This document shows, piece by piece, positions 8,830 to 61,965 of a stretch of 64,000 nt of DNA. A program made the translations under genes and the position numbers. Source of the stretch: Chlorokybus atmophyticus (lineage: Eukaryota > Plantae > Mesostigma and Chlorokybus algae); assembly GCA_009103225.1 (NCBI GenBank), contig RHPI01000984.1, forward strand, positions 1 through 64,000, read 5' to 3'. The number at the start of each line of letters is the position of its first letter. Positions within the stretch are counted from its first letter, which is position 1. Under the pieces are notes generated by a model. That model was given only the letters and a program-made list of their open reading frames with translations, had not been told where the DNA came from and did no database searches.

Positions 8830-9720
8830 TGGAGGCAATCATCCTGCAGTGCCGGCAAGTTGCCGCACACGCCTATGTCCACAGTAAACATAACTTGGAG
8901 ACAACGGATGCATTCAGGCAATGCCACCAAGCTGCTATATTTACTCCCATCCTGCTGCAGAGCCATGAGTCCACTGGACTCAGTGGCACTTGCTTATCTG
9001 TTCAGATAAGCAAGTTGCCACTGGAGAAATGCCGCTTTAGCCTCCTTGCTCCTCTCCTCTTGCAGCTGATTCAGCGCAGCAACAACAATAGGTAACAGCC
9101 TATTGACAGATTCCAGCAGCGCCGCCAAGCGGGAGCACCCGGTCAGGTTCCATTTTTGCAGAGCAGCGAGGTTGCCGAAAGACTCCGGCAGCGACACCAA
9201 GCTTATGCACTCTCTCAGGTCCAACCATTGCAGAGCAGCAAGGTTGCCGAAAGATTCCGGCAGCGACATTAAGCTTATGCACTCTCTCAGGTCCAACCAT
9301 TGCAGAGCAGCGAGGTTGCCAAAGGACTCCGGCAGCGACACCAAGCTGTCACACTGAAATGGGTTCATCCCTTGCAGAGCAGCGAGGTTGCCAAAGAGTT
9401 CCGGCAGCGACGCCAAGCAGCAGCAAGAGCCTAGGTCCAATGATTGCAAGGCATGGAGCTTGCTTAAGGAATCTGGCAATGCCTCCAATAAGCGGTCATC
9501 GAGGTTTAGCGTTTGCAAAGCCGTAAGATCTTTGAAAGAAGGGGAGCGTGCTAACAACCATGTAATTGAGGACTAGAGTCTGTAGCATAGTAAGCCCGCC
9601 AACCGCTTGAGGCAGCTCTTTAAACTCGTAACAGCCGCGCAGCTCCAAAAGTTGCAGGGCCTTAATATTGCTAAAAGACTAAGTCAGCAGCACTCAGACA
9701 TCAACATCGTAGGTGGTTTG
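8830..9720 (-). pseudogene. Decayed LRR region of another NLR paralog
   Basis: ORF 8994-9557 has about 6 repeats of LPESFGNLAALQWLDLRECISL and ends LLESVNRLLPIVVAALNQLQEE. Further degenerate LRR pieces lie at about 8830-8990 (YSSLVALPECIR) and about 9560-9720. Confidence 0.85.
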
Positions 9721-10730: not shown

Positions 10731-12782
10731 GCGTTAACGCGTAACCGTGTGTACTCGCTCTATATCTCAACGCCGTTGACGCAGACGTGTGCATTCAGTT
10801 GGATTGTTGTTTGCTTGCGCATCTATGTTATCCATTACCTGCACACAGATTGCACACAGATTACAATGCTTGAATTGTCAAGACCCCGTGTGTATTGAAG
10901 TCTGCCTGCTTGCTCTTAACCATCCGTTTGACTTGCTTGCAGCACAGCATGCATCATGCATACGCCGTGCAGCACAGATGATATGTGTGTTGCACACGTG
11001 ATTATGGCTTATACTCTGTGCAATTACGTCAAACGGCGGCCACACATGCTACAATGTGCCTCACAGCGGTGAATGCATGGACCTATCGATTGGTCCTTGC
11101 GACGCACTATGAGTGACAATGTAATTCATACCACGTAACCAGTTACGGTTATGAGAGGAGATGACAAATGCTGATACCTTTCATCAACAGTGATTGATAC
11201 ATGCGTCTTTAAGCATAATTTGACGAATACACATAATCGCTAATATGAGATATTTAAACAATTGCAAACTTAAGTTTGGAGATGTTGAGGCATTGCAAAC
11301 GCCATCCCAAGTTTTGCAAGCTTGTAAAATCAAGAGCACGTACTATTATATAGCCGAAGTTGTGTCTCGAACAGGTATAAAATTGCCTCATATGACTTCG
11401 GACGCAACATGAGGCTGGCATCCATGCTTGCGGTGAATGTAATTGAAATTCATGTGAGCCCAGTTGGAGAGCTCGCAAACAGGCAGCAACCTCTATTCCT
11501 TTGACATACCAACGTTGAGCTGTCAGCGCAGCTACCATGCCTATCATGCACACAACACACATCCACATCCTACTCTTCGCAACTGGTGCCTGTACAGCCA
11601 TGTGAGTCAGACTCATGTAAGCCAGATTTCACGGCGCATGAGATACATGCCGCGTTTACATATGTGGCCTTTGCTGCTCTATACACATGGTTTGTGTTCA
11701 ACTCCGTTTGACACTGGATTTCAAGGTCACGCGGCTCGTAGTCACGGTACATGTACCTGGCTCTGCGTAAGCTTGGAGGAGGCGCCGCGGGCGGCCTGGA
11801 CATGGACCAGAGCAGCAGCAGTGGCAAGGTAGGCGGGGAGAGAGAGTGGAGGTGTCGGGGCTGAGGCGCGACGCCGCCTTGCACAAACAGGGAGGGAGAG
11901 GGGCGGACAAGCGCGTTGGAAGGAAGCAGCTGAAGGTGCATTGCCGTGCCGCCGTCCGTCTTTGCTCGGCCGCTGGTTGGGCGGCGAGCACAGTCGCCAT
12001 AGCAGCACGCCAGCTGGCTAGTCACAGGCAGGTCAGCTATGCAATGCGTTACCGACATGCATGCCGCTGGCGGTGGTTGGTTAGCAGTGCCATGGCAGGA
12101 CATTTATTGAGTATCATGTTCTGTGAAATCGCATGCGCAAGCAAAAGAGCAATCGACTGCATGTCAACTGTTCAGCCGAGTGTCGAGCTTGGCCGCAGCC
12201 TCGTTGCAGCGCCCGCTGAGCTTGCGTGTAAAGAGAGTCGAACTCACCTGTAGCCTTGTGTGCTGCGCTATGTTTTGTCCTTGCGCTTGCTTGGCATGGT
12301 CAAGCTTGCAGAACGGGACTTCTTTAGCTAGCTAACTTTATGCCTTAAAACGAGCAGCAGCTTCGCATTGTTGGTGTGCAATTAGTGCACTTCACTGTCT
12401 TTGTTTCCGCTGACAGGCACTCTACAATTCTACTTGAACATCAACGGCACATGCGTGGTTGCATGTCACTGTGCACCACAGGCGTTGCAAGCTCCCAACA
12501 TTGTGTCTCGCTTCAGGCCAGCAAGGGGGAGCCGGCTTTAAGGTTGCAATGGACATGTTGGCCCCCAACGCAAACCTCAACGGTAAGCTCGGGACCAACA
12601 CAAACAGTACCATTCCAAACGTGCTTGACATGTTGATGTGCGTCGGGGTTTGCAACTCATGTTAATCCTGCGCAATTCGCAACTTCCTTACTTACCAGCT
12701 GAATACAAGACGGCATTTCCCCCCAAGCAGTAATGCTCCATGAGCCCTCTGACCAGTCAACTTGCGTGCAGACGGAGACAAT

Positions 12783-15700
12783 ATGGCGCCAGTAGAGACT
12801 GTTGCACATATCACCTGCGACGTTTTCTTGAGCCATAGAGGGCCTGACACTAAGAAGAATTTTGTTGACTATCTTCTCGCCAGTTTCAAAAGAGTTGGAA
12901 TTACCTGCTTTGTAGATGAATTCAGCTTAGACCCCGGGACACCCAACACAGCCTGGGACGTTATCATTGCCCACGCACGATCCGCTCGAATAAAAGTACC
13001 TGTTCTATCTCTTAACTACGGGGAGTCCTGCTACTGCCTTGAAGAGCTGCGCGTCATTACGGCAAATCCAACAAACATCATCATACCTATCTTCTTTGAT
13101 GAAACCGACAAGCTGCAGGCCAGAATCCAGGAAAGCATTCACAGGTGGGTAGATTCTCCTGTACTCCCTAGTCAATCAGGTTTGTTTCATGACCAACTTT
13201 TTGCGTCTTAAGTGCATGCCAGCGCGGTGGAACGCTTTATGTTCAAAAGGAATCTGCATACCACAAGGCGGTGGAGCAAGTGTTTGAGAGAACGGCCATC
13301 AGACTTGATCAAGTCAATGGGTGAGCTCGGTGGTCAGCGTTGATGTGGTCAACGTCTTGGCTGCGGTTGTCAGGCATTGTGTTGTGACATTTACCCTTGA
13401 CTGGCAGGTACACTGGGTCTAGATTGACAGAAGCTGTGGTGAAAGCAGTGCTGGACACGTTAGACCGCCCTGTCTTGGAAATTGCCAAATACCCCGTGGA
13501 TATGGACTTACGCGTTGGGGCTGTACTCAATAAGTTGCGTGCTGCTGAGAGTAAGGTCGTCATGCTGGGTCTTTACGGCATGGGTGGTGTTGGGAAGACT
13601 ACACTTGCAAAGGCGATTTACAACAGGCTGTATAGCGAGTTTGCTGGCAGTGGCTGCTGCTTTGTAGAGGTCGGACCAAAAGAACAAAATGCAACACATT
13701 CCGAGAACGCCAGGCTGGTACAGCTGCAACTGCTCATGCTCAAACAGCTTACTGGGAGTAAAGAATTCAAAAATGACACCAACTCCATCGATGAAGGGAC
13801 GACAAAGTTGCAGAATCACTTGCGAGACATGAAAGTGCTGCTTGTTGTCGATGACATCTGGAGTGACGATCAGAGAGAAGCCCTCCTAGATCCTTTCAAA
13901 CTGGGGGCTTCCAGCCCTGTGCTAGGTACTGGAAGTGTTGTGTTGGTGACCTCTCGTGACCTCAGCTTAGTTGGGGGGCATGAGCAGCATTCGTTGGTGG
14001 AGGAAGTGGCGGGGCTCGATGATCAGCCCGCCAAGAAGCTGTTCTGTCAAAGTGCCTTCAGCTCGGATCAAGTGCCTGGTGAGTTGGAGCGAATTGTAGA
14101 AGAGATCATCTATGCGTGCCAGGGCCTGCCGCTCGCGCTTGACGTTGTGGGTCGCTTTCTGGGCAAGCGCAGGATGAAGGGTGTGCAGTTTTGGGAAGAA
14201 ACACTGCATCAATTGCGAAATGCAGAAGCGCTCACAGGTACTGCGGACGACCGATTGTGGCAAAAGCTCGAGCTCAGCTATAAAGATCTAGCGCCCGATT
14301 ATCAACAATTATTCTTGGACATCTGCTGCTTTGCATTGGGGAAACACAAGGACAATATGCTTGCAGCGTGGGGCCAGGGCACGTCGCTGAAAGTGGATCT
14401 CCTGGTGGAGAGGTCCCTCATTCGCTTGGTACCAAGCACTGATGATGAGTGGCGCGATTGTATGGTCTTTTCAGTACATGACCAGCTCCGAGACATGGGA
14501 CGGATGATTGCCAATCGTACTCCGTTCGAGCACATCCTAACAACCGCTGCAAATAGTATACCTCAGAAGGTGCGATCTCGTGTTCTATTGCATGTCTCAA
14601 GCAGGGGGTCTTTTCTGTAGTGGCACCTTCATCGTATGTCGCGCATGGTCAACTTTGGGGGTTGATGCATGCAATCAGTCGGACTTGCACTCTACAAACT
14701 CGTTACACCATGTATGTTGAGAGCACGTTGCTCGCATATGACATGGTGCTGAATGCAGGACTATGAGTTTGTGGAGACTATGTCTTGTGCTGGTGGCACC
14801 TGGAGGGAGATATCATTTGGCATGCCCTTCATGCCTCGTCTCCGCTTTCTAGACCTTGGCACAACTGATTGGGATGGCACATTTCCAAAGGGAGTCCCTA
14901 AACAGCTGGTCTATCTGGAGTGGGAGGGCCCGCGCCGTTCAGCGTTGAGCACTTTACTGGCTGGTGTTGCGGCGTGCACAAAGTTGGTCCTCCTAAAATG
15001 TCACAAAATTGACCCTCCAGTTCAGCGGCTGGGGACTTTGTGGGGGGCCGAGGTCACGTCGGAGAGGTTAAACCCAAGCGGAAATGTTGACGCTGGGTCA
15101 CTCCTGCGGCTGGAGTCTGTTGGCAAGCTCGCTGCGTTGAAGAGGTTAGACCTAAGCTACTGCTACAGCTTGGTAGCGCTGCCAGAGTCATTTGGCAAGC
15201 TCACTACGCTGCAAGTGCTGGACCTACGTGGTTGCAGGTTGTTAAAGGCGCTCCCAAAGTCTTTCGGCAAACTTGCTGCTCTGCAGACACTGGACCTAGC
15301 TGGGGACATGTATGGCAGCCACTTGAGGGCGCTCCCGGAATCCTTTGGCAAGCTCACCGCCCTGCAGATGCTGAGGCTATGGAAGTGCCACAAGTTGGTG
15401 GCGTTGCCTGAATCGTTTGGTGAGCTTGCTGCTCTGCAAACGCTGGACTTGAGCTGGTGTAGCAGCTTGGTCGCGCTACCGAAGTCTTTCTGCGCGCTCA
15501 CTGACCTGCAGACGTTGGACATGCGACAGTGTGGCAGCTTGATAGCACTGCCGGAGTCCTTTGGAGCGCTCGCCGCATTGCAGATGCTGAACCTGAGCGG
15601 GTGTAGCAGCTTGGCAGCGCTGCCGGAGTCCTTTGGAGAGCTCGCCGCGTTGCAGATTCTGGACCTGAGTTGGTCGCAGTCGTCTCTCCGGCACGACCCA

Positions 15701-16510
15701 AATCATCTTGCAGTTGACTTCTGGAAACTGGATCGGGGCTTGTCTCGCCGCCGCAAATGCAGACTCCAGCAGCGCCATCGTAGCTTGGCGGCGCTCCCGG
15801 AGTCCTTTGGCAAGCTTGCTAATCTGAAGGCATTGGACCTGAGTGGGTGTGGCAGATTGGCAGCGCTGCCAGAGTCGTTCGGCAAGCTCGTAGATCTGCG
15901 GGAATTGGGTCTGAGCAGGTGCCGCAGCTTAGTGGCGTTGCCGGAGTCCTTTGGTAAGCTGGTTGCTTTGCAAAGGCTAAACTTGAGCAGGTGCCACAGC
16001 TTGGCATCGCTACCAGAGTCCTTCGGCGAGCTTGCTCAACTGCAAAGACTAGACTTGAGCAGGTGCCGCAGCTTGGTAGCGCTGCCAGAGTCCTTTGGCA
16101 AGCTCACTGCTCTGCAACAGCTACACCTAACTGGGTGCCCCTGCTTGGCGCTGCCCAAATCCGTCAGCGAGTGGGACGCTGTTGTTTATGCGCAGCAGCA
16201 GCAGCACGATAAGCTTTTGCTCGAGGCGAAAGAGGAAGAGGAGGAGGAGGAGGAGGAAGCGGAGGAGGAGGAAGAGGAGAAGGAGCAGGAGCAGGAGCAG
16301 GAGGAACAGGAGGAGGAGTTTACCTGGATGCAGATATCATTATTGGTATTCCTTTCTGCGTATTGCATTTACAGGCAAATCACCCCCGGGCCCGTGCGTA
16401 TCACCATGAAGGTGATTATCATCATCATCATCATCAAGATGATGATGATGATGATAATGGGGTTGTATGCCACCATCAGGATAAACTTGAGGTTCTTATG
16501 GCATGTGTAG
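12783..16510 (+). CDS. TIR-NB-ARC-LRR (TNL) immune receptor; model join(12783-13144,13213-13320,13408-14569,14759-16510), about 1127 aa
   Basis: TIR motifs are DVFLSHRGPDTKKNFV and YCLEEL (catalytic Glu). NB-ARC motifs are P-loop GMGGVGKTT, Walker B LLVVDDIW, RNBS-B VLVTSRD, GLPLAL, FLDICCF and VHD (MHD). There are 13 regular 24-aa LRRs. Introns are GT-AG with consistent phases, but the exon 1/2 boundary has an alternative solution. Confidence 0.93.
16415..16458. repeat. Inverted microsatellite ATT(ATC)6-AA-(GAT)6AAT
   Basis: Perfect 21-bp stem with a 2-nt loop, read directly. Confidence 0.9.
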
Positions 16511-19037: not shown

Positions 19038-22000
19038 TACGGTTGCGGAGGCGAGTGCGGTAGCGGTTTAAGGGACGAGGCTGCGAATACACTCTACTTG
19101 TGAAGGAAAGGAGGTAAAGATGGAGGATGTCCGTGTTGAGGAGCTTCAAAATGCAGTCTTGGCACTGCGAGAAGAGCTTCATCACATGCAAGCGGCGGCA
19201 CAAGCACAACGCGAGGCGTACAAGCGTGCCATGGCGCATGCACAAGTTCCCACGGCGTCAAGCTCGCGCGTGCATGTGAAGGTGCCAAAGCCAGAGCCAT
19301 TCAAGGGTCAACGTGATGGAGATGTTGTGGACGAGTGGCTCTTCCAAGTGTCATCATTGTTAAAGCTCACGAAGGTACCCGCACACTTACATGTGGAGGT
19401 TGCCGCGACATTGCTTAAAGGTGCAGCACTTGTGTAGTGGAGGCATCGATGTACGCGTGTCGCAAATGGGTTGGCGCTACCATTGACCACCATGGAAGAG
19501 TTGGCAATGGATCTCCAACCTCGATGTCAGGCTTCAATTTGTTCCCGTTGAGAGCGTGAAGGCCGCACGCGACAAACTTGCGGCACTTGTGCAAATGGGG
19601 TCGGTGATGGCGATGGCGACACGGCTGCGTTTCAACGATTGGTGATGTCCATACCCAATATGACCGAGGAGGAGCAGCTGGACAGGTATACACGTGGTTT
19701 AAAACCTTTGGGGCGTAAAGAAAGTGGAGCTACGGGACCCGCAGACACTCGCGGAGGCTATACGCATCGCGGAGCGTCTCGACGCGTTGTACTTGAAGTC
19801 CACCACAAGAAACACTGAGTGGAGGCAAAGGCATTGGATCAGCCCCGGGGAGGCTTTCAACATGCATGGAGACGAGGAGAACCAAGTTTAGCGCTTGCCA
19901 ATGGAGGTGGAGCTGACTCTGGGCCTGCACCAATGGAGGTGGGTGCCATACACACGCGTGGAAGTGAGGCGAAGCACGGCGGCGACGTGGTGAAAGAGGT
20001 AAAGGTGTGCGCAAGTGTTATGCGTATGGGTCGACTGAGCATTTGGCGTACGGATGTCCCAAACAAAGCACGCAAAGGCCAACATCGGATGGCAACCCTC
20101 GTCGTGATCGTCACGTCAACACCATGGAGCAAAATGGCGTGGAGACTTCCCCCAGTAGGTGAGGAGGCTACTGCTGGGGATAGGAAGGAGCCTCATGCAC
20201 GGACGGATGCTGTGACATGTCTATTAAGGAAGCAAGAGGAGATGGCTATGAACGCGCCAACGGTGGTGAGTTATGCAAAAGAGGAGCCAACAAAGTACTT
20301 CGGGCTTCAAGCACACATTTGCGATGACCAAGGACGATGGAGAGAGTGTAAGCTCATGATTGATAACGGTGCCAACAGCAACTTTGTAATTATTGATATT
20401 GCGCGGCGTTACGGTTGGCTTTTGTCATTAGAGGAGGTGAAGTGAAGCTCGCTGATGGAGAGCCACCCTCTGGAGGTAATGGCGATGCGTTCATGACCAA
20501 AGAGTTGTGCAATCGCATTAGGAAGATGAAAGAGAACATGCGATTTTGCTGCATCACCCTACGGAACGGGTTTGACGGGATTTTTGGACTACTGTGGCTA
20601 TGGCAACATAATCCATCCATCAATTGAAGGAAGCGCGTGCTCACCATCAAACGAAATGGTGGAGAGTTCATTCAAGCTGCATCGGACGTCATCGAGGCGC
20701 GGCACGCACAATCAGGTTGTACGACAATTGATCAGATCTCTTATATGCAGTTGGGGAAGTTAATGTCTCCACGGAAGGCAAAGGTTGCATGGTTATGCGT
20801 GGTGCGCGAAAACACTGCAAAGTCAGCACCAGAGCTGATTGACGATGTTAAGACGGCTACGATGGACCCCGAGGTGTGTAAACTTGTTGAAGAATACCAA
20901 TATACCATGGTGGACGGACTTCCATCTGGTTTACCACCTCCACGGAGCGTAGACCACTGTATGGAGCTAATTGAGGGCGTGCACAAGCCACTGCATCAAC
21001 CCGTATACAAGTTGTCACCTTTGGAGCTAGAGGAGGCCGAGAGGCAGGTGGCGGACTTGCTAAAAAGAGGCTACATCAGGCCTAGTACGTCCCCTTATGG
21101 TGCACCTATCTTGTTTGTACGAAAGAAGAACGGGAGCTTGCGCATGTGCGTCGACTACCGAGCTCTCAACAACATCACAAAGAGGAATTGCTTTCTACTC
21201 CCACGTATCGACGAGTTGCTTGAGCAATTGCAAGGTGCGCAGAACTCCACAACACTTGATTTTGCTGATTGTTATCACCAAATCCGCATCACGCCCGGGG
21301 ATGTGGAGAAAACTGCTTTTACCACACATTATGGGCACTACGAGTGGTTGGTTATGTCCTTCGGACTTACGAACGCGCCGGCAACATTTCAAACGCTAAT
21401 GACTAGCGTTTTCGCTGACTTGATTGGTAAGGGAGTCCTCGTGTACCTCGACGACATTTTGGTGTACGCGAAGACAAAGGAGGAGCACGTGGCACTTCTA
21501 CAGCGCGTGTTGCAGCGTTTGCGCGAACACAAGTTGTACGCCCAGCTATAAAAGTGCAAATTCCCCGACCAATGTAAAGGAGGTGATGTCCTTTTTAGGC
21601 CTTGTAGGGTATTATCGCAAGTTTATCATGGGGTTTTCGCGCATAGCTGCTCCCTTGATTGCCCTACTCAAGAAGGGAAAGCCTTGGAGCTGGTCAACAA
21701 CAGAGGAACATGCATTTGCTGCGTTGAAGAAGGCGCTGACGGAGGCACGAGTCCTGGCTCACCCCGACATGGAAAAGACATGTATTTTGGCTTGCGACGC
21801 GTCCGACGCAGCCGTAGGAGCTGTTTTGCAGCAAGACCATGGCAACGGCCTTTCCCCTGTAGCATTTTTCAGCAAGAAGATGAGTGGTGCGGAGCTGAAT
21901 TACCCCGTGCTCGAGAAGGAACTTTTGGCGCAAGTAATGGCGCTACGACAATGGCGTTGTTTTTTGGAAAGCAAAAAGTTCATGCTTGAGACGGATCACT

Positions 22001-24399
22001 CTCCACTGAGGTACTCACAAACACAACCTCATCTGAGTCGCAGACAAGCACGATGGCTGTAGTTCTTTCAACTTTTTGACTTCGATATCAAGTACAAGCC
22101 CGGTACGTTCAATGGTGTTGCTGACGCGCTGAGCCGGCTTAATGCAATTGAGGCACTCGCTCAAGTGCAGCCCGAGTGGACCAACCAGATTCGGCAAGTG
22201 CTTCGTGAAGACACGAAGGGTATGAAAGTGTTGCAAGAGCTGGAAAGTGCAGCCACGGACACAAGTGGGCATTGGTCAATGCGCGACGGGCTGCTATGGC
22301 ACCACGGGCGCTTGTACATCCCCAACGTTGCGCATATTCGTGTGAAGTTGCTGAAGGAAGCTCATGATGTGCCCATTGCTGGTCACCAAGGGTTGGAGAG
22401 GACTTTGGCAAGCTTGAAGCAGCGTTTTTACTGGCTAGAGATGCATTGCAATGTGCGCAATTACGTGGCGTTGTACGACGCATGCCAAAGGGTGAAGGCA
22501 AGCAATTAAAAGCCAGGTGGGTTGCTGCAACCTCCTTCTGTGCCATTGTCCAAGTGGGAGCAAGTTACCATGGACTTTATCACCGGGCTACCAACGACAA
22601 AAGAAGGGTACGACGCTATACTTGTATTCGTCGACAAAACCAGCAAAATGGTGCGCTTGGCACCGTGTGGTGAGTCTTGCACGGCACCGGAGGCAGCGCG
22701 CTTGTTCGTGAAGCATGTGTTTCATTCTCATGGATTACCACGAAGCATTGTTAGTAATCACGACCCGCTTTACAAGTAGGTTTTGGGAGGCGTTTCATAG
22801 TGCACTAGGTACCACATTAAAGTTTAGCACGGCAATCCACCCGCAAACTGATGGGCAAACGGAGCGGGCCAACCGTATAATCGAGGACATGCTGCGTTGC
22901 TATGTTAACGCGCGACAAGACAATTGGGCGGAGCTGCTTGAGTTGGTGGAGTTTGCGATCAACAACCACCACAATGCAAGCACAGGTGTCACTCCTTCCT
23001 TATGAACTACGAGCAACATCCATTGACACCGTTGACGGCATGAACACCGCGACGACATGACGTGCGTGTGGAGGCAGCTAATGACTTCCTCACAAAGTGC
23101 GCGGACATTGATAAGGCAGCTAGGGAGGCGCTATTGGTGGCATAAAACAGGCAGAAGCAATACGCGGACGCGCATCGCCGACACCTCACATTGGAGGAAG
23201 GCGACATTGTGTTACTCTCCGCGAAGCATGTACAGGTGCGTACGGGAGTTTGCAAGCTAAATAAACGCTGGTTGGGACTATTTAAATTCAGCAGAGTTAT
23301 CTCTGACGTGGCGTACAAGCTTGAGCTACCCGACACCATGCGTGTGCACCCTTTTTTCACGTCTCCCTTTTAAAGGCATATGGAGGGCAACCGCCAGAAA
23401 GGCCGCCCCCCGAAGTTGGCACGGATGGTGAACCAGAGTGGGAGGTAGCACACGGAATTTTATCCGCGTACCAGCCCTAGTCCGCACGCACGGACCATGG
23501 CCAAAACGCCAGGACGGCTTGGGGCCCGGACCAGGGTCACCCGCCTTGGTCCGAACGCGGGGACCAAGCCTGGTCAAGAAATGCGGGTTTGTCACGCTTG
23601 GTCGCGGGAGCAGGACCAGCCGTGGCTGCTTTGTCGTCACGTGCGCAGTAGGACCGCTGTTGGTCTCTCATTCATTTTGCTGCATGGACCAAGGGTGGTT
23701 CTCTCCCAGCAAAGTTCTTTCAAGAACATCACCAATATTGGTCCCGAGTAGTCGGACCCGCCTTGGTTTGCACCGTAGGAGCATGCATGGTCCAGACTCG
23801 TGGGACCAAGCGGTAGTTTGCTGTTGGGACCATGCATGGTCCACACCGAGCAACTGCAGCGTACCAGCCAAATTTTGCCGCACTGGTCCATGCTTGCATC
23901 CAAGACCAGCACTGGTGCACGACACCCGCTGGCATCCTGCACTAATGCTGGTCTATGACCCATGCACCAGCATCACACAATTTACAGTAACCAATTCTGT
24001 TATATGGATGGTACGTGTTTGGCAATCAGCCAGACCGTTAACGACAGGCTGCAGATTGATCAAACGGCTATGCGACAGCAGCCTTCTGGTAACTATCTCC
24101 AGCGCTCATACCGTCTAGGACCAAATCAAGCGTATGCTGTGCACACCACGTGATCCAGTCGCTGCAGGCACATGTTCCCTCTGTTCGCACAACCTTGAGC
24201 AGATGTAGACCGCCTGTGAGATGGACAAGTGCACGTCATGTGCGCCAACATCTGTTGTTGTCGTGGACACTGCGCGCACACTATGTGAGCAACACATCAA
24301 TTGAGGAACACAATGTACATTCTCAACAGTGGCAACAATGCAAGATTCCCTCTGGGATACCTATGATCTTGCAAGGTTTCCGTCCCGACTGGCTCCTAG

Positions 24400-30414: not shown

Positions 30415-33400
30415 GTCCCCTTATGGTGCACCTATTTTGTTTGTACGAAAGAAGAACGGGAGCTTGCGCATGTGCGTCGACTACCGAGCTCTCAACAACA
30501 TCACGACGAGGAATTGCTTTCCACTTCCACGTATCGACGAGTTGCTGGAGCAATTGCAAGGTGCACAGTACTTTACAACACTTGATCTTGCTTGAGGTTA
30601 TCACCAAATCCGCATCGCGCCCGAGGATGTGGAGAAAACAGCTTTTAACACACGTTATGGGCACTACGAGTGGTTGGTCATGTCCTTCGGACTTACGAAC
30701 GCACCGGCAACATTTCAAACGCTTATGAACAGCGTTTTTGCTGACTTGATTGGTAAGGGAGTCCTCGTGTACCTCGACGACATTTTGGTGTACGCGACAA
30801 CAAAGGAGGAGCACGTGGCACTTCTACGGCGCGTGTTGCAGCGTTTGCGCGAACACAAGTTGTACGCCCAGCTACAAAAGTGCAAATTCATGCTTCGAGA
30901 TGTGGAGTACCTAGGCCACATCGTGTCGCATGAAGGCATCAAGCCGGACCCCAACAAAGTGCAGGTGGTGCGCGAGTGGGCTGCCCCGACCAACGTAAAG
31001 GAGGTGATGTCCTTTTTAGGCCTTGCGGGGTATTATCGCATATTTATCATGGGGTTTTCGCGAATAGCTGCTCCCTTGACTGCCCTACTTAAGAAGGGAA
31101 AGCCTTAGAGCTGGTCAACAACAGAGGAACATGCATTTGCTGCGTTGAAGAAGGCGCTGACGGAGGCACCAGTCCTGGCTCACCCCGACATGATGGAAAA
31201 GACATGTATTTTGGCTTGCGACGCGTCCGACGCAGCCGTAGGAGCTGTTTTGCAGCAAGACCATGGCAACGGCCTTCCCCCTGTAGCATTTTTCAGCAAG
31301 AAGATGAGTGGTGCGGAGCTGAATTACCCCGTGCTCGAGAAGGAACTTTTGGCGCAAGTAATGGCGCTACGACAATGGCGTTGTTTTTTGGAAAGCAAAA
31401 AGTTCATGCTTGAGACGGATCACTCTCCACTAAGGTACTTACAAACACAACCTCATCTGAGTCGCAGACAAGCTCGATGGCTTGAGTTCTTTCAACTTTT
31501 TGACTTCGTTATCAAGTACAAGCGCGGTACGTGAAATGGTGTTGCTGACGCGCTGAGCCGGCTTAATGCAATTGAGGCACTCGCTCGAATGCAGCCCGAG
31601 TGGACCGGCCAAATTCGGCAAGCTTCTTTTGAAGACACGGAGGGTATGAAAGTGTTGCAAGAGCTGAAAAATGCAGCTACGGACACAAGTGGGCACTGGT
31701 CAATGCACGACGGGCTGCTGTGCCACCACGGGCGCTTGTACATCCCCAACGTCACGCATATCCGTGTGAAGTTGCTGAAGGAAGCTCATGACGTGCCCAT
31801 TGCTGGTCATCAAGGGTTGGAAAGGACTTTGGCGAGCTTAGAACAACGTTGTTACTGGCGAGAGATGCATCGCGATGTGCGCGACTACGTGGCTTTGTGC
31901 GACGCATGCCAAAGGGTGAAGGCAAGCAACAAAAAGCCAGGTGGGTTGCTGCCTCTCCCTGTGCCATTATCCAAGTGGGAGCAAGTTACCATGGACTTTA
32001 TCACGGGGCTACCAAAGACAAAAGAAGGGTACGACGCTATACTTGTGTTCGTCGATAAAACCAGCAAAATGGTACGCTTGGCACCGTGTCGTGAGTCTTG
32101 CACGGCACCGGAGGCAGCACGCTTCTTCGTGAAGCATGTATTTCGTTCTTATGGATTACCATGAAGCATTGTGAGTAATCGCGACCCGCGCTTTACAAGT
32201 AAGTTTTGGGAGGCGCTGCATAGCGCACTAGGTACCACATTAAAGTTTAGCACGGCATCCCACCCGCAAACTGATGGGCAAACGGAGCGGGCCAACCGTG
32301 TGATCGAGGACATGCTGCGTTGCTACGTTAACGCGCGACAAGACAATTGGGCGGAGCTGCTTGAGTTAGTTGAGTTTGCGATCAACAACCACCACAATGC
32401 AAGCACAGGTGTCACTCCCTTCCTTATGAACTACGGGCAACATCTATTGACACCGTTGACGGCATGGACACCGCGACGACATGACGTGCGTGTGGAAACA
32501 GCTAATGACTTCCTTACAAAGTGCGCGGACATTAACAAGGCAGCTAGGGATGCGCTATTGGTGGCACAAAATCGGCAGAAGCAGTACGCGGACGCGCATC
32601 GCCGACGCCTCACGTTTCAGGAAGGCGACATTGTGTTATTCTCCGCGAAGCACGTCCAGGTGCGTACGGGAGTTCGCAAGCTGAATGAACGCTGGTTGGG
32701 ACCATTTAAGGTCAGCAAAGTTATCTTGGACGTGGCGTACAAGCTGGAGCTACCCGACACCATGCGTGTGCACCCCGTTTTTCACGTCTCCCTTCTGAAA
32801 GCATATCGAGGACAACTGCCAGAAAGGCCGCCCCCCAAAGTTGGCACGGATGGTGAACCAGAGTGGGAGGTAGAAGACATCCTTGGTGAGAAGTTTGTGC
32901 ATGGCGTATGCAAGTTTTTAATGAAATGGAAGGGCTATCCGTTGCACGAAGCATCCTGGGAGCCAGAGACACACTTGAAAAATGCTCAAGACGTTGTGCG
33001 TGACTATCTTGCTCGACGACAACCTCGCGAGCTTCGAGGACGAAGCTCACCTAGGGGGGGAGGAGTGTAACAGTCAAGGCCAAATTTTGTGATTTTCATG
33101 GCCATTTTAGGCCTTATTTGTAAGGTACATGTTTTATGACTTGTGGCGGATATCGGCGAGTTATGAGTCTGCCGCGGATCGACCGGGGCCCCAAGACCAG
33201 TCCGGAAGGTGCCAGAAAACGGAGGGCCAGTCGAGAAGGGCTCGACCAGATTTCTGGAAGGGCCTGGCGCCAAGTAGTATAACTTGACCATATGAGCAGC
33301 AAATTAGGAGATCTTTGGTGCGTTGGAAAGGTCTAGAAGTGTACTACAAGATTCTGCAAGAATATCTTAGCTTCTAGTTCCGTCTAGCGCTAGAATCGTC

Positions 33401-47035: not shown

Positions 47036-50000
47036 TTACTGCAACTCCGTCTCAAAAGCTAGAATGTCATCATCATCCACCTCTGAAGCACTGCTATCGC
47101 TATCATCATCTGACTCCTCAAAAGATGCTGGGTCCCATGCGGCAAACTGCTCCTCATATTCTAGATGACTGATGAGCTCAAGCAAGCGCACGTTACTTAA
47201 AACCCAAACCAAATCGCGTGCTCGTGATGGGCGCAGCTTGTTACGCTTCTTGTTGTGAATGAAGTCGTATGTGCTCCAATTCCGCTCGCATGATGATGCC
47301 ACAGTGACTTGAGCAAGGACGCGCACCGCAACGCGTTGTAGTTCTGGTGTACTGCCTCCAAATTGAAGCCACCACTGATGCGCAGACATGTTGCTGGCGG
47401 AAGCCTTAGCTATATCACGTCCAAACAATCCATGACCACTACGATACTGCGACAGCTGGTGGGCGAGTTGCGCTTGGCTATCTGCAGTAGGCAACAACTT
47501 CTCCACAATGTTAAAGAAGCCAGACATGACATCATCGTCCTCATGCTGATCCATAAGCCGAAACTCAGGATTCAACACAAACCCAGCACACAATAAATCT
47601 GTCTTCATCATCTTCCAACGTGCATCGAAGCGGTCCAGGACTGCTTCCAGCAACGTCGTTGGTAGCACCGCAGCTTGCAGGGTCTCGCGGGCGCTGCTCA
47701 TGCGCTGGTACAGCTTGCCTACATGCACACAATGATGTCAACGTTGTGTACTTATGCATACACAATTGCAGAATGTGTAATGTACTCACCCGTGGTCGGG
47801 TGATTGCCGTCGGTCAGGCGCAGCACTTTGATTAGCGGCTCAAGAGCTGCAATAATCTGCCCAACTTGCTTCCAGAAATGTGAGGACAAAGCTATCTCTC
47901 TAGCTAACTCAGCACCTCGCGGATGTTCGCCGTGCTGTGCTGCCCATGATGACCATGCGTCGTCGACCACAGTCTTTGCCAAGTCGGCCTTCACCTCTAG
48001 AAGCCGTTGCAGCATGATGAAGGCGGAAGCGAAGCGCGTCTCACCAGGCTTGAGCAGCGTCTTTGTTGTCTTCGACCTGCACATCAACATGCAACCAAGT
48101 AAGTCAAACAAAACACTCAATTACACAAGCAGACGGGCTGCCTCAAGCTACATACAACTCACCTGAATATGGCCAGACTCTTGTGATGGTTTGAGATGAA
48201 GTTGACAAGGAACTTTCCTTTCTTGATGCTTGTTGCGAAAAAGGGCATCTTGCCGATGTCTTCAAGCAGCAAGTGTAGGACATGAGCTGCGCAAGGGCTC
48301 CAGCTCACATGCTTGTACTGCCTTGTGATGATGGCGCCAGCCGAGACACATGCACTGGCACTATCAGTGACGACTTGCACGACAGTTTCTGCACCCACCT
48401 GCACAAACAAACACATTAGGAGACGCACATGCAGCCCTAACTTACACACGCACACACATGCAGCAAAAACACACACGCACACGCATGCAGCAACAACACC
48501 AGTGCACACATGCAGCAAAATGCAGCCAGTACACACACACACATGCAGCCCTAACATACACCCACGTGCAGCAAAATGCAGCCAATGACACACCCCCATG
48601 CAGCAACATACACCCACACACGTGCAGCAAAATGCAGCCAATAGACACACACATGCAGCCCTAACATACACATACGCAGGTGCAGAAAAATGCAGCAAAA
48701 ACACACACACATGCAGCCCTAACATACACATACGCGTGCAGAAAAATGCAGCAAACACACACACACACATGCACCCCTCTCACACACATACGCGTGCAGA
48801 AAAATGCAACAAACACACACACACACATGCAGCCCTAACACACACATACGCGTGCAGAAAAATGCAGCAAACACACACACACACATGCAGCCCTAACACA
48901 CACATACGCGTGCAGAAAAATGCAGCAAAAACACACACACACATGCAGCCCTAACACACGCATACGCGTGCAGAAAAATGCAGCAAACACACACACACAC
49001 ATGCACCCCTAACACACACATACGCGTGCAGAAAAATGCAGCAAACACACACACACACATGCAGCCCTAACACACACATACGCGTGCAGAAAAATGCAGC
49101 AAACACACACACACACATGCACCCCTAACATACACATACGCGTGCAGAAAAATGCAGCAAACACACACACACACATGCACCCCTAACACACACATACGCG
49201 TGCAGAAAAATGCAGCAAACACACATACACACATGCACCCCTAACACACACATACGCGTGCAGAAAAATGCAGCACACACACACACACACACATGCACCC
49301 CTAACACACACATACGCGTGCAGGAAAATGCAGCAAACACACACACACACATGCACCCCTAACACACACATACGCGTGCAGAAAAATGCAGCAAACACAC
49401 ACACACACATGCAGCCCTAACACACGCATACGCGTGCAGAAAAATGCAGCAAAAACACACACACTAATAGCAAAAACACACGCGCATGCATTAGGACTGG
49501 ACGGATTAACTCACCAACTCAATGGCGTTGGCAATCTGCCTGGCTATGTACGCTGCCGACTTAGTTTCTCCTTCGGTGTTGACGGCGTCCAAGAACACTG
49601 CTCCATCAGGCGACACTTGCAACAAATTCCAGCAATGGCCTACTATTCACATCAGTCCATCCATCACTAGTTATTGTACAGCCAGTCTTGCGCACATTGT
49701 TCCTGAATTCTATCAGCTTGTCATCAACGTCAGTCTTCACCCTCTTAAGCAAGGTTGTGCGCAGTGCATTGTATGACGGTATTGTGTAAGAAGGTCCAAA
49801 TCTAGCAACAGCCCGCATCGCAAACTTGAACAAGGGACTGCGCACTAGAACGAAAGGCAGGCCTTGCCCATAAAACATGCGTGCTACAGCCTCATCAGTG
49901 CGCACTTTACTGGCACGGTCGAATGCCTGAATGATGCGTGGAGTTTTGGTGGTTTCAGTGGTGAGGTCAACGGTGGCACTCTGTTGATTGAAAACATCAC

Positions 50001-50277
50001 CAATGGTGCGCTTTTTCTGTGTTGCTTGCAGGACAGCAACTGAAGCTTCTTCAACCTTCAAGAAATGAGCACGCACATCTTCTGGTACGGTCATGCATGC
50101 AGCCACACCGACACCTATCTTGCCAGTCAGGTGCGCACGAATCCTCGTGACACCTCCTTGAAACTTCTTCTTGCAGTAGACACATTCGACCTTGGACTGA
50201 TTTATTGTCTTGCTGCTTGACTCGCATAACTCTTTGACATGACGCCACTCATCTGCTTGTCTCTTGCCCGAGGCCAT
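47036..50277 (-). pseudogene. hAT transposase (BED zinc finger, DUF659, hAT dimerisation domain), 4 exons, one frameshift
   Basis: Motifs are CVYCKKKFQGGVTRIRAHL (BED), ITSDGWTD, VVTDSAS, PCAAHVLHLLLEDI, ETRFAS, WWLQFG..TPELQRVAVRVL and SSCERNWSTY. A single +1 base near 49630 breaks LLNLLQVSPDG. Confidence 0.93.
48420..49480. repeat. About 56-60-bp CA-rich minisatellite filling hAT intron 1
   Basis: The unit GCA(G)CCCCTAACACACACATACGCGTGCAGAAAAATGCAGCAAACACACACACACAT repeats roughly 17 times and varies in (CA)n length. Confidence 0.93.
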
Positions 50278-51155
50278 GTCCTGCAGCAGGACCATTGCCT
50301 TGGGCAAAAGACAAGCAGCTAGCAACCGACAACCAACACACCCACACATGTGAGAGAAGGTTGCATTTGTAACAAGACACGCTAACCTGAAGCGCCTCTC
50401 ACGCCGCTGACGCCGCCCACGTCTCGCCCCTGCTCCTGCTGCCTGCCCTTGCCCTGCCGCCGCCGCCGCCAGAACAAAGCAGAGTTGCCGCCAGAACAGA
50501 CCAGAGGCCTGCTGCACGCGCGAGGGTTTCACAAAAATTTTCTAAGGCAAAAAACCCTAATAAATACGCCAAATACGCGTACCAAATACTGCTGGCTGTT
50601 GGTACGCGTATAATACGGTATCAGAAGTCCTCTGATGCCGTATCGTGCTACTATGTGTGGATGGCCCGGTGTATTCGGTCAGTGGTGATGTAGTTGAGCT
50701 GCGAGACGGGGACAAAACCAGGTGGGACGAAACGATAAACGATGTTGTGTATGCGCGTATCTTAAACACGGACAATGTGCTCAAGGGGGCATTACTTCAG
50801 GTGCTGGAGAGTGCGCTGGAGTTCGCACACAGTCTCAAGGACTCCACCGTGGTGCGGAGCAAGTTCAAATATGCGGCGATGCGGCGCATCATTCGCTGCC
50901 GGGAGGTGATCCGAAGTGGAGTGAAGCACTACGTAAGATGACCATCTGGTTTGCAGCCTCTTTGACTGGCGGACCCACCAGATGTACTTGTAGAGAGAGG
51001 TTTTACGTAGCACGAGCTAACCCTTATCATCACTAAATGTTGGCTTGCATGTGAGCGTCTCCATGCAACCCAGCTACTCCAACTGCAGTCTTGTCATGTT
51101 GTCTCATGTGTGCGCATTCGCATGCAAATACTACCCGTGCAAACGATTGTGCCAG

Positions 51156-53689: not shown

Positions 53690-54790
53690 CTTCAATGTCA
53701 AGCACCCACAGCTGCACCCTCTACCTATCCAAGGACTGTTCTATTGATGGAGCCTAGATCTGGCCGGAGATCTACCAGTCAGTAAGAGAGGCAACCGCTA
53801 CGTGCTCGTGATAATAGAGCACGTTTCAAAGTGGATAAAGATAGTGGCGCTGCCATCGAAGAAGAGCAAGCTTGTAGCGGAGGCTTTTTTTGACGAAGTA
53901 CTGAGCAGATTTAATGCTTGTGCTGAGGTTCTCACTGACCAAGGCACGGAGTTTCGTAACCAGTTCAATGACTTGTTGGCGCAAGCCTTCATCGACCATC
54001 GGTAGACTTCCCGTGACCATCCTCAGGCCGATGGGCTTGCTGAGAGAATGGTACACGTGGTGAAGAAGGGGCTCGCAAGTACTGTCTCAACCACAACAAG
54101 AGAGACTAGGACTTGGCGTTGCCATGGTTGGTGATGGGCTATCGCATGACGCGGCAGGCTGCGTTGAGCTCATACAGCCCTTACTTTTTGTTGTACGGGA
54201 GAGAGCCCATACTGCCAATATGAATCCGTAGACAGGTTGAGCAGGAGCTTGACCTAGAGGATCCCAATGTGTGGGAGAAGGAGATGGCGAAGCGTGCAGA
54301 GCTGTTCCGGCGTGTGATGCCGATTGCACTTGGCAACTTGCAAGTGGCACAACTCCGCGACACGCTGCGCTATGCCAGGGTGAGGAGTGGCTTGTACAAG
54401 CCAAGACTGCAGAAAATTTCAGCCCGGAGACTTTGTCTACTTGCAGAGGAAGACTAAGGACACAATGGATACGAGTGCGAGCCGCACCATCCTTCGTGTG
54501 AAGAAGCTTCTCAATAACGGTGTGTTGTTGTTTGAGGGAGCTGATGCCCGAACCACCAAGGAGCACATGAAGAGCTGCGCTCCTTGCCATCTGCCAAATG
54601 TGGATAATAGTGTGGATCCGGCTCTGGCAATACTAGATGTGGGCCACCGTTGTGAGCGGTGTGGCCGAGCAGAGGGTTGGGACACCATGCTACTATGCGA
54701 CAGGTGTGTTGCCGGTTGGCACATGGAGTGCCTTCGTCCACCACTTGAGGAGATTCCTAATGAAGCATCGTACTGTCCGGCGTGTACAAG
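53690..54790 (+). pseudogene. Ty3-type integrase (rve) fused to a C-terminal PHD finger
   Basis: HPQLHPLPIQGLFY*WSLDLAG, VLTDQGTEF, HPQADGLAERM (D,D,E) and SPYFLLYGREP, then CERCGRAEGWDTMLLCDRCVAGWHMECLRPPLEEIPNEASYCPAC (C4HC3 PHD). Stops and frameshifts are present. Confidence 0.9.
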
Positions 54791-54929
54791 GACACGCATC
54801 TTTCGTATGCGTGTCTACCATGTGTCGAGAGATAGTGCGTGAGACAGCATGACATGGTCTCATGGTGTACAATAGCATGCGGACATGCATGACAAGGTGG
54901 TTTACGACGAGTTCAAGTCACGATGAGGG

Positions 54930-57665: not shown

Positions 57666-60156
57666 GTCGCAAGAACTATCTTTTTTCGTTCTCTATGCAT
57701 GACGCATATAGGGAATGAACCTTTTGCAGTCACGCAATTTTACGCACAGTCACGCTGCATTGCGGCGTGTCTGTACGCAACACGTGACGCAGCGTGAGTA
57801 GACGTTACACTATTGGCTAATACACGTTTTCATATATGTGTTGTTTAGCACAATATATGCCACTGATGATGCAATGCTTTGTGTTGAATGATGCATGTGA
57901 TTGTGCTAACCAATATACGCCTTTTTATAAATATTATGTACAATTTATCAAGATTTCGTTTCGTTCGGATTATTGTTCATTATTGTTGGTTCGTTTGCTG
58001 TCACTCAATGATGTCGCCAAAACAAAGCAAGGTTATATGAACCTTAAACTTTATGATAACAATATTGTTCAGGTTCTTGTTCTTTGTTCGTGCGGTCATG
58101 CCCGAACCTAGGTTCGGCCCCAGCCCTACTGATTAGCACTGATTGATCTACTCATTTATCTGATTGATTAAGTATCAACCTGTAGATTATTACAAATCAT
58201 TACTGTAGGAGGGATTCTGTCAGCAGGACTTCTTAGCGGCGCGTGTGCTGTGCAGGCACAAAGCCCCGCTCAATCAAGCAGTTTTTCCGGCAACTTTCCG
58301 CCACTGTCATCATCATCAGCCTGAAGCTACTCCGACGTGTTTGCGGAGTGGCATCCACGTGGACATTCAGAGGGGTAGGTTGTTGCCTTGGCTTTGGTGC
58401 AGGCGTGAGGCAGAAGGTTGGCGGCATTGTTGGCGTGGTCTGTTGCTGTGACGTGCGAAAGCTTGGGGAGGAGGTGGCACATACAAAGGAAGCATAAGGG
58501 TTAGGGTGAGGGTAAGGGCGTGATCAGGCTGTCAAGGTCTGGCAGCTAACCACGGGGGTGGCTAGCCAGGTCGACCGCCTTGCGGCTGTTGCTGGCTGGC
58601 TTTCCGCCTCTGCCTAAGATATGGCGTGGGCGTGCTGTCGCTGTTGAGCTTGGCTGTTGTTTATGGCGATGGTGACGGTGGGGGCGACGGCACTGCCGGC
58701 TGTGTCGTTGGTAAGGCTCGAGGTGTCGGCGTTTTCTTGCGGCGAGAGTCAATGGCGAGCCGAATTAATTGACAAGCACAAAATTGTGCCAGTCTTGCGT
58801 GGTTCTGGCTCTTCCTTTTTTGCAGAGTCGCTGCGGGGAGCTGCCGTCCGGTCCTCCAGCAGGCCGCACCGCACCTTCACCAAGCGCTAGCTTGCTTCTA
58901 AAGCAACCGTCCCTGGAGTAAACCTATCCGACATTGAGCCAACGGAACAGGTGAGCTCGGTTGAGGTTCTCATTCTGTGGCAGATTCACTTGTGAAACAA
59001 GGAGAGCTAGCTAGCTGTACAACTATGCCTGGCTGTGTCTGTTGCGCATCCGGCAACAACCGGTTGTGACTCTGCCAATTGACCGTTCGCTCATGGTGTT
59101 GCTTTTGCAGAGTATCTCCCAGCAAGACTGCCCTTTGTTCTAAGTGCTGCGGGCCATTGCCATACCCTCGTTTGCTGTCTTCTGTACACCAGCGATTGTT
59201 GCGGCAGCTGCTGTTGGAGCTGTTGCCAGCCATATTATGAAAGAAGAGGCGGCATCTGCTTTCGATGATGCACCTGTTGTGTAAGTTGCTTGCTGATGTG
59301 GGATCACCCTCAAAGTGGTGACGAATGGCTGTCACGCGTTGAGTGCTCTGATGCATTTGTGCGCGCACAGGCACTACAAGTCAAGGCACAATAAGCAGGA
59401 TACGGTGCGCAATGCGTTCATGGTCAGTCAATGCGTTGCCTTTGATGCGGCGTTTGCCGCATCCGTCATGATGCTACACCCTGTGGTCGTCGCTGTTGCG
59501 GCCGCTGTTGGGACCGTCACCATGGTGGACTTGCGAAGTATGATCAGCTCCACGGCAGGGAATGACAGTCACAGCGGGCCAGAACTGGCGGCCATATCCA
59601 AATCAGCAGCGTCAGGAGCCCAATCGAACAATCAGGCTGCAGGTGTTCGCACATGTACACACCTGCAGACTCACAGCATACCAATGTGTGCATATGTGCT
59701 GCATACACGTGCTATATACAGATGCTGTCGTTCTTTGTGTATTCCTTCAAGACCTGCATTAGTTAGATCTGCTGCGCATAAAAGCAGTCCTTTGTCTTCA
59801 TTGAATTGCAGTGAGCTCAGTCGGACTGCACACAGTCTACACCAAGTGCATTGGCTACATACAAGCATGTAAGCACAGCTTACCAAACAGTATGGCATGC
59901 TGTTGCATATGCTGTGCACAAACTTTTTGGCATGCCTTCTAGAACTCAATGCTGCACTGCCTTCTTTGTTGTGCACATTGCCTTGTTTACCAAGGTACTG
60001 TGCACCACAACGTCAGTGTGCACACTACCTAATTGGCACTGTATTGGTTAAGTGCGTGTGCCATCATCATGCACACCTGTGAGCCCATGCCATGCCTGCG
60101 CCCCGATTACCTGGAGCACCTCATGTTCACTCAACAGCCCACGTGTTGCTTTGCAG

Positions 60157-61965
60157 GAACAAGCACAGACACAACAGGTACAACCGCACATAGCAACAAT
60201 GCTGCCAGCAGCAACAGCAACAGCAACAGCACCGTGTTGGGACGCACTGTATACCTATTGCATTGTTAAGCGTGTCCAGAACACGCTCAACAGGTATTGC
60301 CATTGCAATTGCCAATTATGCCGTCTCGAGGAGGACCTTACCATCTCTCCCGCACCCAGACAGGAGTAGCTGGCTTGCGACTGATTGACCGGTCTGTCAT
60401 CGTAATCCATTCAGGTCAACTGGCTTGCAACACTGCGCGATAAGTACAATCTTCAAGTGCTTTTGGACTGGGAACCGCATAAGGACACATTGGAGACTTG
60501 AACCAGTAAATATGGGACTGCAGGCTACAAGGTCTGTGCACATGTAACTGTCATGCTCGTGACCAACCAATACTCAACGCACCAATGCGTGGTGCACGCT
60601 AGGCATCACGCAGTTGCTCAGCACAAACACTGCTTGCAAAGGCCCCCCAGGGGGGGCCCCTGCGATTGCAAGCTTGTTGATACTGTCGTGACTCAGCTAG
60701 TGGAACTGCAGGTAGTGGCGGTGGGAAATTTGAATGTGTTGATGTCGTCAAGCAAACTGCGGAAGGACATGCAGTTGCGAATGCCGTTGCGCGGCAGTGG
60801 CAGCTGCTGACATGTCTGCTGAACCAAATGCACAATCAAGGCAGGTGGCTCGTACTAATCGTCTTCAAGGTTGGTTCGCTCGCACATACACCCCTTGCTG
60901 TCACTGCCATTGGGCGAACAGTTGTTTTCAGACTCAAGGCGTTCAGTGCCCCGCAATTGTATCATTAATTGTATTTGGTGCGCAGGGTGCTATCCCACGA
61001 ATGCACATTCCCGAGAGGCTACGGGAATTCAGATGCTACTAAATAGATCCCGACTCGGACACATCTCAATCGGTTTTTACAAGCTTCCTGGCGGGTTTGG
61101 AGAATAAATGGGTCTTCTTGTCTTATTGCCAACGCGCCGTGACGCACGTGCAAAAGGTGTCACTGTTGATGGTTGGCTGAATGCAGGCCACACCTCTGTG
61201 ATCTGGTCGCCAACCGTGCCTACAAAACTGCATTGTCCTCTTGATATATGCAATCAGCTCACCTCCTGGTTGCATAAACGTGCAGGTGTCTCAGCTTGCG
61301 TGGAGGATACATGCTTGTGGATTTGAGGTAGTCATCGATCAGATAAAACCTTATTCCATGGCATGGGCCCAGTTTATTGCGCAGGGTTTTGCGGAAGGCA
61401 CCAAGGTTTGCGCACACGTCCCTTTTTCGAACATGAAAACTTATTGTATGTGATGTCGGCTCTGTGGTCATCTAAATGCAGTTCAGGTTCTCGTGGTGGG
61501 AGACCCAGATTATGTGCGGATTGCCAAACGGGACAACACGAGCACGTATGATGATGGGCACGGAGTATCAGTGGAATGGCTGCAGATATCCACAAGGATT
61601 TTCAACCAGCACAACGCAGGCAACGCTGCTTGTACCAGTGTTCTTGAAGGTTCGTTTCCTTACACATGAATGGTCACAACAGTTGCGCTTGTGTAACGAC
61701 TATGCGAGCGCCAAGGCAATCGCGCAGACGCCGTTGAATGCTATAGGTGGTACTGCTGCCATCGCATTGCCTGCAACCCTGTGAGCTTCTCTCTTGGAAT
61801 GTGCAGGGCGGTAACCGGGAAACCCGCCTCCCTGAATTGCTACAATCGTGGACATATCATCAGATCGACCCCGATTCTGAGTGTGATCCAGGTTCTGAAG
61901 GGTTATTGGATTATTTGAACGATGTGTTGCCCAAGTTGCAAGTTCATCACCCAACCGAGGATTGA
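60157..61965 (+). pseudogene. Tandem SEFIR/TIR-like domain gene; exons 60157-60293, 60415-60531, 60712-60869, 60986-61156, 61286-61405, 61487-61649, 61807-61965
   Basis: Domain 2 splices to KWVFLSYCQRAVTHVQK|VSQLAWRIHACGFEVVIDQIKPYSMAWAQFIAQGFAEGTK|VLVVGDPDYVRIAK...GHGVSVEWLQI...LLVPVFLK|GGNRETRLPELLQSWTYHQIDPDSE..EGLLDYL. Domain 1 is a diverged copy with the same phase-0 intron positions. The gene has 3 stops and 2 frameshifts. Confidence 0.75.

Follow-up and report, generated by a model that had tools for sequence, protein, structure and literature searches.

Probable remnant of a membrane-anchored tandem gene for bacterial-type SEFIR domains in the alga Chlorokybus atmophyticus

Background

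SEFIR domains have been described in two settings, the IL-17 signalling of animals and the anti-phage defence of bacteria. Animal SEFIR domains serve as adaptors and lack the context of a catalytic-type Glu. The subject of this report is a locus in the early-branching streptophyte alga Chlorokybus atmophyticus, contained in a stretch of 64,000 nucleotides (positions 1 to 64,000 of the forward strand of contig RHPI01000984.1, assembly GCA_009103225.1; hereafter the window). Two similar halves were delimited in it, domain 1 at 60157-61060 and domain 2 at 61100-61965. Domain 2 is a genuine domain of the SEFIR/TIR superfamily and of bacterial type, and the locus as a whole probably represents a gene in decay, which once had ten exons and encoded a membrane-anchored protein with two such domains in tandem.

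Bacterial SEFIR proteins protect against phage (Millman et al. 2022, 10.1101/2022.05.11.491447) and deplete NAD+ by means of the SEFIR domain (10.1101/2024.02.11.579819; 10.64898/2026.09.04.749371). No publication that names the catalytic residue of bacterial SEFIR was found, and a catalytic role for its Glu is suggested here by analogy with TIR. Likewise, no paper was found that treats SEFIR together with Chlorokybus or Viridiplantae. A 2026 atlas of the STIR clan across EukProt (PMC13142454) used the database that holds the protein annotated at this locus, without discussing that protein.

An earlier note on this DNA, made from the sequence alone, had proposed a hidden gene here, possibly of an unreported TIR-superfamily signalling class. 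As a sequence the gene is neither hidden nor unreported, since a public model covers domain 2 and is already labelled PF13676 in precomputed Pfam annotation. This model, identified by exact look-up, is EukProt EP00898 Chlorokybus atmophyticus jgi/Chlat1/3720/Chrsp258S03873, a protein of 220 residues (P0001). A phmmer search with the second exon of domain 2 (E2b, Table 1) matched its residues 79-117 at 100 % identity.

Comparison of domain 2 with described SEFIR and TIR proteins

The closest described relatives are the bSEFIR defence proteins of bacteria. P0001 matches the PADLOC bSEFIR profile (PDLC03957) with an E of 5.5e-14 (50.8 bits), its residues 56-207 covering the whole SEFIR domain at profile positions 33-182. 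With Pfam TIR_2 (PF13676) its residues 63-128 align to positions 1-64 at 28.3 bits (E 2.7e-6), barely above the gathering cut-off of 28 bits and over the first half of the profile only, and with Pfam SEFIR (PF08357) its residues 63-136 align to positions 3-80 at 21.3 bits (E 3.5e-4), which is under the cut-off of 23; both matches lie in the first half of the domain. Its nearest clusters in a protein atlas are bacterial SEFIR/TIR_2 (score 0.94). Searched alone, E2b matches TIR_2 at 15.1 bits (E 0.033); apart from this, exon-by-exon searches of Pfam, PADLOC and PDB returned almost nothing, the exons being too short. P0001 had no match in NCBIfam, none in PDB by phmmer, and none to the plant-type TIR PF01582 in Pfam at E up to 10. 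The family named in the earlier note, SEFIR or TIR_2 rather than the TIR of plant TNL receptors, is thus upheld for domain 2, while domain 1 gave no profile match.

A tblastn search against plasmids gave 20 weak matches, all on annotated TIR-domain genes. Two of these genes were examined and match bSEFIR at 228 and 142 bits, each together with Pfam SEFIR and TIR_2. The 228-bit gene lies at 2977-4362 of a Deinococcus sp. QL22 plasmid sequence (L001), adjoining a site-specific integrase and an IS6 transposase and close to a ThiF-family gene, a setting typical of mobile defence islands.

A custom profile was built from the N-termini of 68 bacterial bSEFIR relatives gathered with one plasmid bSEFIR, and it matches P0001 with an E of 1.2e-8. 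When all 2750 six-frame stop-to-stop pieces of the window were ranked with it, which is independent of the exons chosen by the earlier reader, the top three were E2b, E2c and E2a, in collinear order. An alignment of 54 sequences, P0001 and 53 bacterial relatives, contains seven invariant columns, V118, Y126, A130, G143, V144, E147 and P177 in P0001 numbering, at an identity of 21-29 % between P0001 and the bacterial members. E147 belongs to a G-V-x-x-E motif (G-V-G-x-E) in helix alphaC.

A structure of domain 2 predicted by AlphaFold from this alignment (predicted local distance difference test, pLDDT, 64; predicted template modelling score, pTM, 0.60) has alternating strands and helices; prediction without an alignment was unusable (pLDDT 34). 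The best Foldseek match of the model was the prokaryotic SEFIR domain 5y8e (E 2.3e-4; VIA Z 13.1). Comparable VIA Z values were obtained with the IL-17R/Act1 SEFIR 9ot1_E (13.4) and the IL-17RA SEFIR 4nux (11.8), followed by the TIR domains of SPARTA and SARM1 (10-12) and of RPS4 (9.7-9.9). The predicted fold would therefore be the flavodoxin-like three-layer fold of solved SEFIR/TIR domains, on which the model superposes. The fold comparison called for in the earlier note accordingly places the model nearest to solved SEFIR domains, and, though no independent proof, the model corroborates the SEFIR assignment.

Domain 2 shares with bSEFIR proteins the extent of the alignment, the invariant Glu of the G-V-G-x-E motif, common P and D positions and, as predicted, the structure of 5y8e. 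Unlike them, the algal gene is eukaryotic, has spliceosomal introns and is broken in this copy; it lacks the C-terminal part of about 250 residues (profile positions 183-412 of 412 are unmatched) and ends about 30 residues past the domain. Its SEFIR part is also C-terminal, after hydrophobic segments, and was probably once tandem. The product taken as a whole does not count among the bSEFIR defence proteins, and membership holds at the level of the domain. With the animal IL-17R/Act1 SEFIR domains (PF08357; 4nux, 9ot1) the algal gene would share the modelled fold and an architecture in which a cytoplasmic SEFIR follows a transmembrane segment in a membrane-anchored protein, but no match was seen at the level of sequence, as the PDB and Pfam SEFIR results above attest, and there is no evidence of common descent nearer than the clan. 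The TIR of plant TNL receptors (PF01582), one of which is encoded elsewhere in the window, has the same superfamily fold, whereas the algal gene has neither a PF01582 match nor an NB-ARC or leucine-rich repeat region and matches SEFIR best.

Exon structure, gene models and a second locus

With a G+C content of about 51 %, the window consists of eukaryotic nuclear DNA, and a bacterial insert or contamination was ruled out by the GT-AG introns together with the TNL and retrotransposon surroundings described below. The peptides, exon borders and intron phases quoted in the earlier note were all reproduced by three-frame and exon-wise translation. AG and GT are present at all twelve exon borders of the two halves, and each half contains three phase-0 introns at equivalent positions (Table 1).

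Table 1 Exons of the locus as mapped onto the window, with their content, borders and stops or frameshifts
Exon	Position	Strand	Length	Content	Borders	Stop or frameshift
U1	58669-58845	+		start of the ancestral gene; P0003 residues 1-59 map here with 93 % identity	GT donor after exon	
U2	59111-59280	+		first hydrophobic segment, probably membrane-spanning	AG / GTAAGT	TAA at 59141-59143
U3	59371-59642	+		second hydrophobic segment; P0001 residues 1-40 and P0003 map here; P0001 begins at Met 59522	ends in phase 1; donor GT at 59643	
E1a	60157-60293	+	137 nucleotides	Ser/Asn/Thr-rich linker and remnant of domain-1 betaA		TAA at 60267-60269
E1b	60415-60531	+		remnant of domain-1 alphaA-betaB, pattern V..LA..L......V.LD		TGA at 60499-60501
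E1c	60712-60869	+	158 nucleotides	remnant of domain-1 betaC-alphaC-betaD		frameshift at about 60768-60771
E1d/E2a	60986-61156	+		end of domain 1 (P..L......IDPDS), linker, domain-2 betaA (VFLSY)		TAA at 61040-61042
E2b	61286-61405	+	40 codons	domain-2 alphaA-betaB-alphaB		intact
E2c	61487-61649	+	163 nucleotides	domain-2 betaC-alphaC, G-V-x-x-E motif		frameshift at about 61619-61627, just before betaD
E2d	61807-61965	+		end of domain 2, with the family-conserved P177 and D187; C-terminal tail		TGA at 61963-61965

When mapped onto the window, P0001 consists of exons at 59522-59642, about 61047-61156, 61286-61405, 61487-61639 and 61807-61965, so that the whole of domain 1 falls within its first intron of 1.4 kb. 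Its borders in domain 2 are independently the same as those in Table 1, with the exception of the E2c donor, which is placed at 61640 instead of 61650. Aligned to the profile, P0001 has a gap and 'CTS' opposite 'fiPvvf', the bacterial consensus for betaD. The alternative frame of E2c reads LLVPVFLK, ending at the ancestral phase-0 donor at 61649, and domain 1 reads WLVLIVFK at the corresponding place. The frame change in E2c is taken as a real lesion because betaD is matched by both the alternative frame and domain 1, before the same phase-0 intron. The donor at 61640 is a way round this frameshift, at the cost of the core betaD strand.

A word search with P0001 found a second model, Chrsp249S03840 (372 residues; P0003), which lies on a different scaffold of this genome. 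Over the common exons it has 88-98 % identity with the translated window, and three upstream exons of it map with canonical splice sites to U1, U2 and U3. Like P0001 it ends at 61965, and on this ground the presence of an EP domain further downstream was rejected. Hydrophobic runs of transmembrane strength occur at its residues 71-103 (Kyte-Doolittle peak 2.16) and 137-175 (peak 2.15). In U2 it reads PLFNVLRA, with Asn, where the window reads PLF*VLRA, and the public model of the present locus therefore begins downstream of this stop. The phase-1 donor at 59642, joined to the acceptor at 60157, leads in frame into E1a, which with its 137 nucleotides then ends in phase 0; this continuity of frame from U3 to E1a speaks for a transcript of ten exons in which domain 1 was once included.

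P0003 circumvents the lesions in another way. It reads E1d in the wrong frame, shows a difference of 1 nucleotide at the E1d/E2a junction and omits most of E2b. The strings 'MLLNRS' and 'NAGNAACTS' in P0003 recur unchanged at the present locus, which suggests that the E1d stop and the state of E2c predate the separation of the two loci. As the Chlorokybus genome has been reported to be homozygous (PMC7027972), the Chrsp249 and Chrsp258 loci are probably paralogues rather than alleles. Word searches with P0001 or with P0003 residues 242-372 gave no relatives beyond these two loci, and the intact paralogs sought by the earlier note did not appear, in that no intact tandem relative was found by word searches of a protein collection that includes the Chlorokybus proteome. 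A further protein (P0002, 639 residues, with tandem repeats of about 40 residues) matched E2b with an E of 4.5e-4 over 19 residues in four stretches, and was set aside as a repeat-driven chance match.

These models could be read at face value, with the locus a live gene for a single SEFIR domain as annotated in P0001 and the look-alikes of domain 1, whatever their descent, being just intron sequence. P0001 is indeed uninterrupted, uses canonical splice sites, keeps the seven invariant residues of the family including the Glu, and scores well as bSEFIR over its residues 56-207. On the other hand it omits a conserved strand that is still encoded in the other frame at the ancestral donor, it begins at an internal Met past the U2 stop and past both hydrophobic segments of the paralogue model, and an open frame at the sister locus is obtained only with another patch, which is implausible. 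No transcript-derived protein of 121-651 residues was found, which may mean no more than that RNA assemblies of Chlorokybus are absent from the collection. A live single-domain gene is consequently considered unlikely, and P0001 and P0003 are patched pseudogene models that preserve an open reading frame.

Relationship of domain 1 to domain 2

Domain 1 is likely to be a decayed duplicate of domain 2, with an identity between the two of about 25 %. Semi-global alignment of the exon pairs, compared with residue shuffles, gave z values of 5.0 for pair a, -0.1 for b, 0.4 for the first part of c, 5.2 for its second part and 9.8 for d, with a summed z of 9.3 that is biased upward by the reader's choice of frames and borders. 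In tblastn searches of the exons against the six frames of the window, E1d and E2d were each other's best non-self matches (E 0.014 and 0.15) and both contain IDPDS exactly; no other pair was reciprocal in this way, E1c and E2c matching each other at E 2.9 and 6. A splice-anchored score was also calculated, for which the six octapeptides flanking the junctions had to lie beside GT/AG sites in the correct order and spacing. It was 43 at domain 1, as compared with 18.7 +/- 8.3 in 89 control bins (p about 0.02), and the E1d/E2d match follows directly after the best chain.

The residues retained in domain 1 (V..LA..L, V.LD, the V of G-V, which has changed from GV to AV, NQ, P..L and I-D) coincide with positions conserved in the bacterial family, while F-S-Y, two Gly, Tyr126 and the Glu have been lost. 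At the place matching the invariant E147 column domain 1 has Gln, as the earlier note had observed, and the Gly there is Ala. The third codon positions of IDPDS differ between the halves in most cases, from which it follows that the duplication is old and was once under selection. The pair VARQWQLL...WLVLIVFK and VSVEWLQI...LLVPVFLK, set out in the earlier note as one of the homologous segments, is present, but it requires a change of frame inside both E1c and E2c, which that note covered only by calling the copy disrupted.

Several results weigh against the tandem origin and the membrane-anchored SEFIR ancestry proposed for the locus. A phmmer search with P0001 over the 2750 six-frame pieces recovered no piece of domain 1, free collinear chaining of P0001 across domain 1 gave a z of 1.9, which is not significant, and domain 1, searched exon by exon, scored no better than reversed decoys against Pfam, PADLOC and the custom bacterial profile, so that a tandem origin read from these sequences rests on moderate statistics. 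The structural model of domain 2 is of middling confidence, and its fold leans towards SEFIR in that the alignment rows behind it are bacterial SEFIR sequences. Finally, expression of P0001 is conceivable, its reading frame being open.

The weakness of these unbiased searches would be expected if there had never been a first domain and the resemblance at 60157-61060 were due to chance, amplified by the choice of frames and borders by eye, and one of the control bins does exceed the splice-anchored score (48, the maximum, against 43). Chance fits less well with the exact IDPDS shared by exons that are reciprocal best matches in the whole window, lying right after the best splice-anchored chain, with the retention of bacterially conserved positions, or with the continuity of frame between U3 and the 137 nucleotides of E1a. 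It is regarded as a little less probable still than a live single-domain gene. Duplication of a domain together with its introns, as put forward in the earlier note, agrees with the matching positions and phases of the introns, but the similarity between the halves is only moderate and was missed by phmmer and by free chaining; an internal duplication is probable and not proven.

Lesions

Six separate lesions were read within 3.3 kb, namely three stops and a frameshift in domain 1, the stop in U2 and the frameshift in E2c, in line with the earlier note's description of the copy as disrupted. Errors of sequencing or assembly in an otherwise intact tandem gene might be suspected in a short-read draft assembly with a run of N in this window. 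However, the lesions are numerous and separate, three of them are base substitutions that create stop codons and not homopolymer slips, and at least two lesions (the E1d stop and the E2c state, as read from the protein strings of P0003) are common to both loci, the second of which was assembled independently. An intact gene obscured by such errors is therefore highly improbable. The active/inactive pair proposed in the earlier note is moot at this locus, where domain 1 consists of dead exons with no SEFIR profile signal and domain 2 is frameshifted.

Genomic surroundings

Parts of a TNL-type receptor, with TIR, NB-ARC and leucine-rich repeat regions, are encoded by three consecutive open reading frames of 149, 407 and 585 residues at 12762-16510 (+). 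The repeats bear the unit 'LPESFG.L..LQ.LDL' and are followed by an acidic tract. An open reading frame of 187 residues at 8994-9557 (-) has 'LPESFGNLAALQ.LDL' leucine-rich repeats like those of the TNL and is possibly a fragment of a different NLR-type gene. Retrotransposon pol regions, in which protease, reverse transcriptase, RNase H, integrase and chromodomain motifs were recognised by eye, occupy 19819-22062 (+) and 30629-33070 (+); stretches of the two are almost identical, and both are probably copies of a single Ty3/gypsy family. Two open reading frames resemble parts of a hAT-type transposase by eye, at 47036-47728 (-) a C-terminal dimerisation part and at 49606-50532 (-) an N-terminal part with a BED finger, and between them lies a strongly skewed Cys/Val-rich repeat (48159-48770). 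Upstream of the SEFIR gene and separate from it, an open reading frame of 151 residues at 54387-54842 (+) has a PHD-finger-like pattern, C..C...C..C..WH..C...P....C..C. The assembly gap is a run of N at about 5270-5500, seen as runs of X in two open reading frames.

Proposed history and function

In the ancestral protein two hydrophobic segments would have been followed by a low-complexity linker and a tandem pair of bSEFIR-like domains, the second SEFIR domain with its three phase-0 introns having arisen through an ancient internal duplication of a four-exon block. In the intact ancestor the cytoplasmic SEFIR pair may have self-associated on activation, by analogy with bacterial SEFIR/TIR proteins; domain 2, with the invariant Glu, could have cleaved NAD+, and domain 1, with Gln, might have acted as a non-catalytic partner or scaffold. 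Decay would have proceeded through the stops and frameshift of domain 1, the stop in an upstream exon and the frameshift that removes betaD from domain 2. A segmental duplication would afterwards have given rise to the Chrsp249 and Chrsp258 loci, each copy gaining further lesions. We infer that neither locus can make the ancestral protein in the present genome.

Conclusions

The practical value of the finding lies mainly in caution, as Chrsp258S03873 and Chrsp249S03840 are patched pseudogenes, and also in the lead it provides to an intact tandem relative in Chlorokybus or Mesostigma genomes. It is conceivable, though a long shot, that in early streptophyte algae a pair of bacterial-type SEFIR domains, one catalytic and one degenerate, once served in a membrane-anchored receptor, of which an intact relative may persist in use. 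If so, paired TIR signalling would have an analogue built on SEFIR, within a wider SEFIR-based immune repertoire of Chlorokybus, and the present locus would be a fossil revealing the paired-SEFIR architecture. An intron-bearing SEFIR domain of bacterial type in an early-branching streptophyte is an added data point on the history of SEFIR, and the tandem, membrane-anchored layout that probably preceded its decay hints at how SEFIR domains have been deployed.

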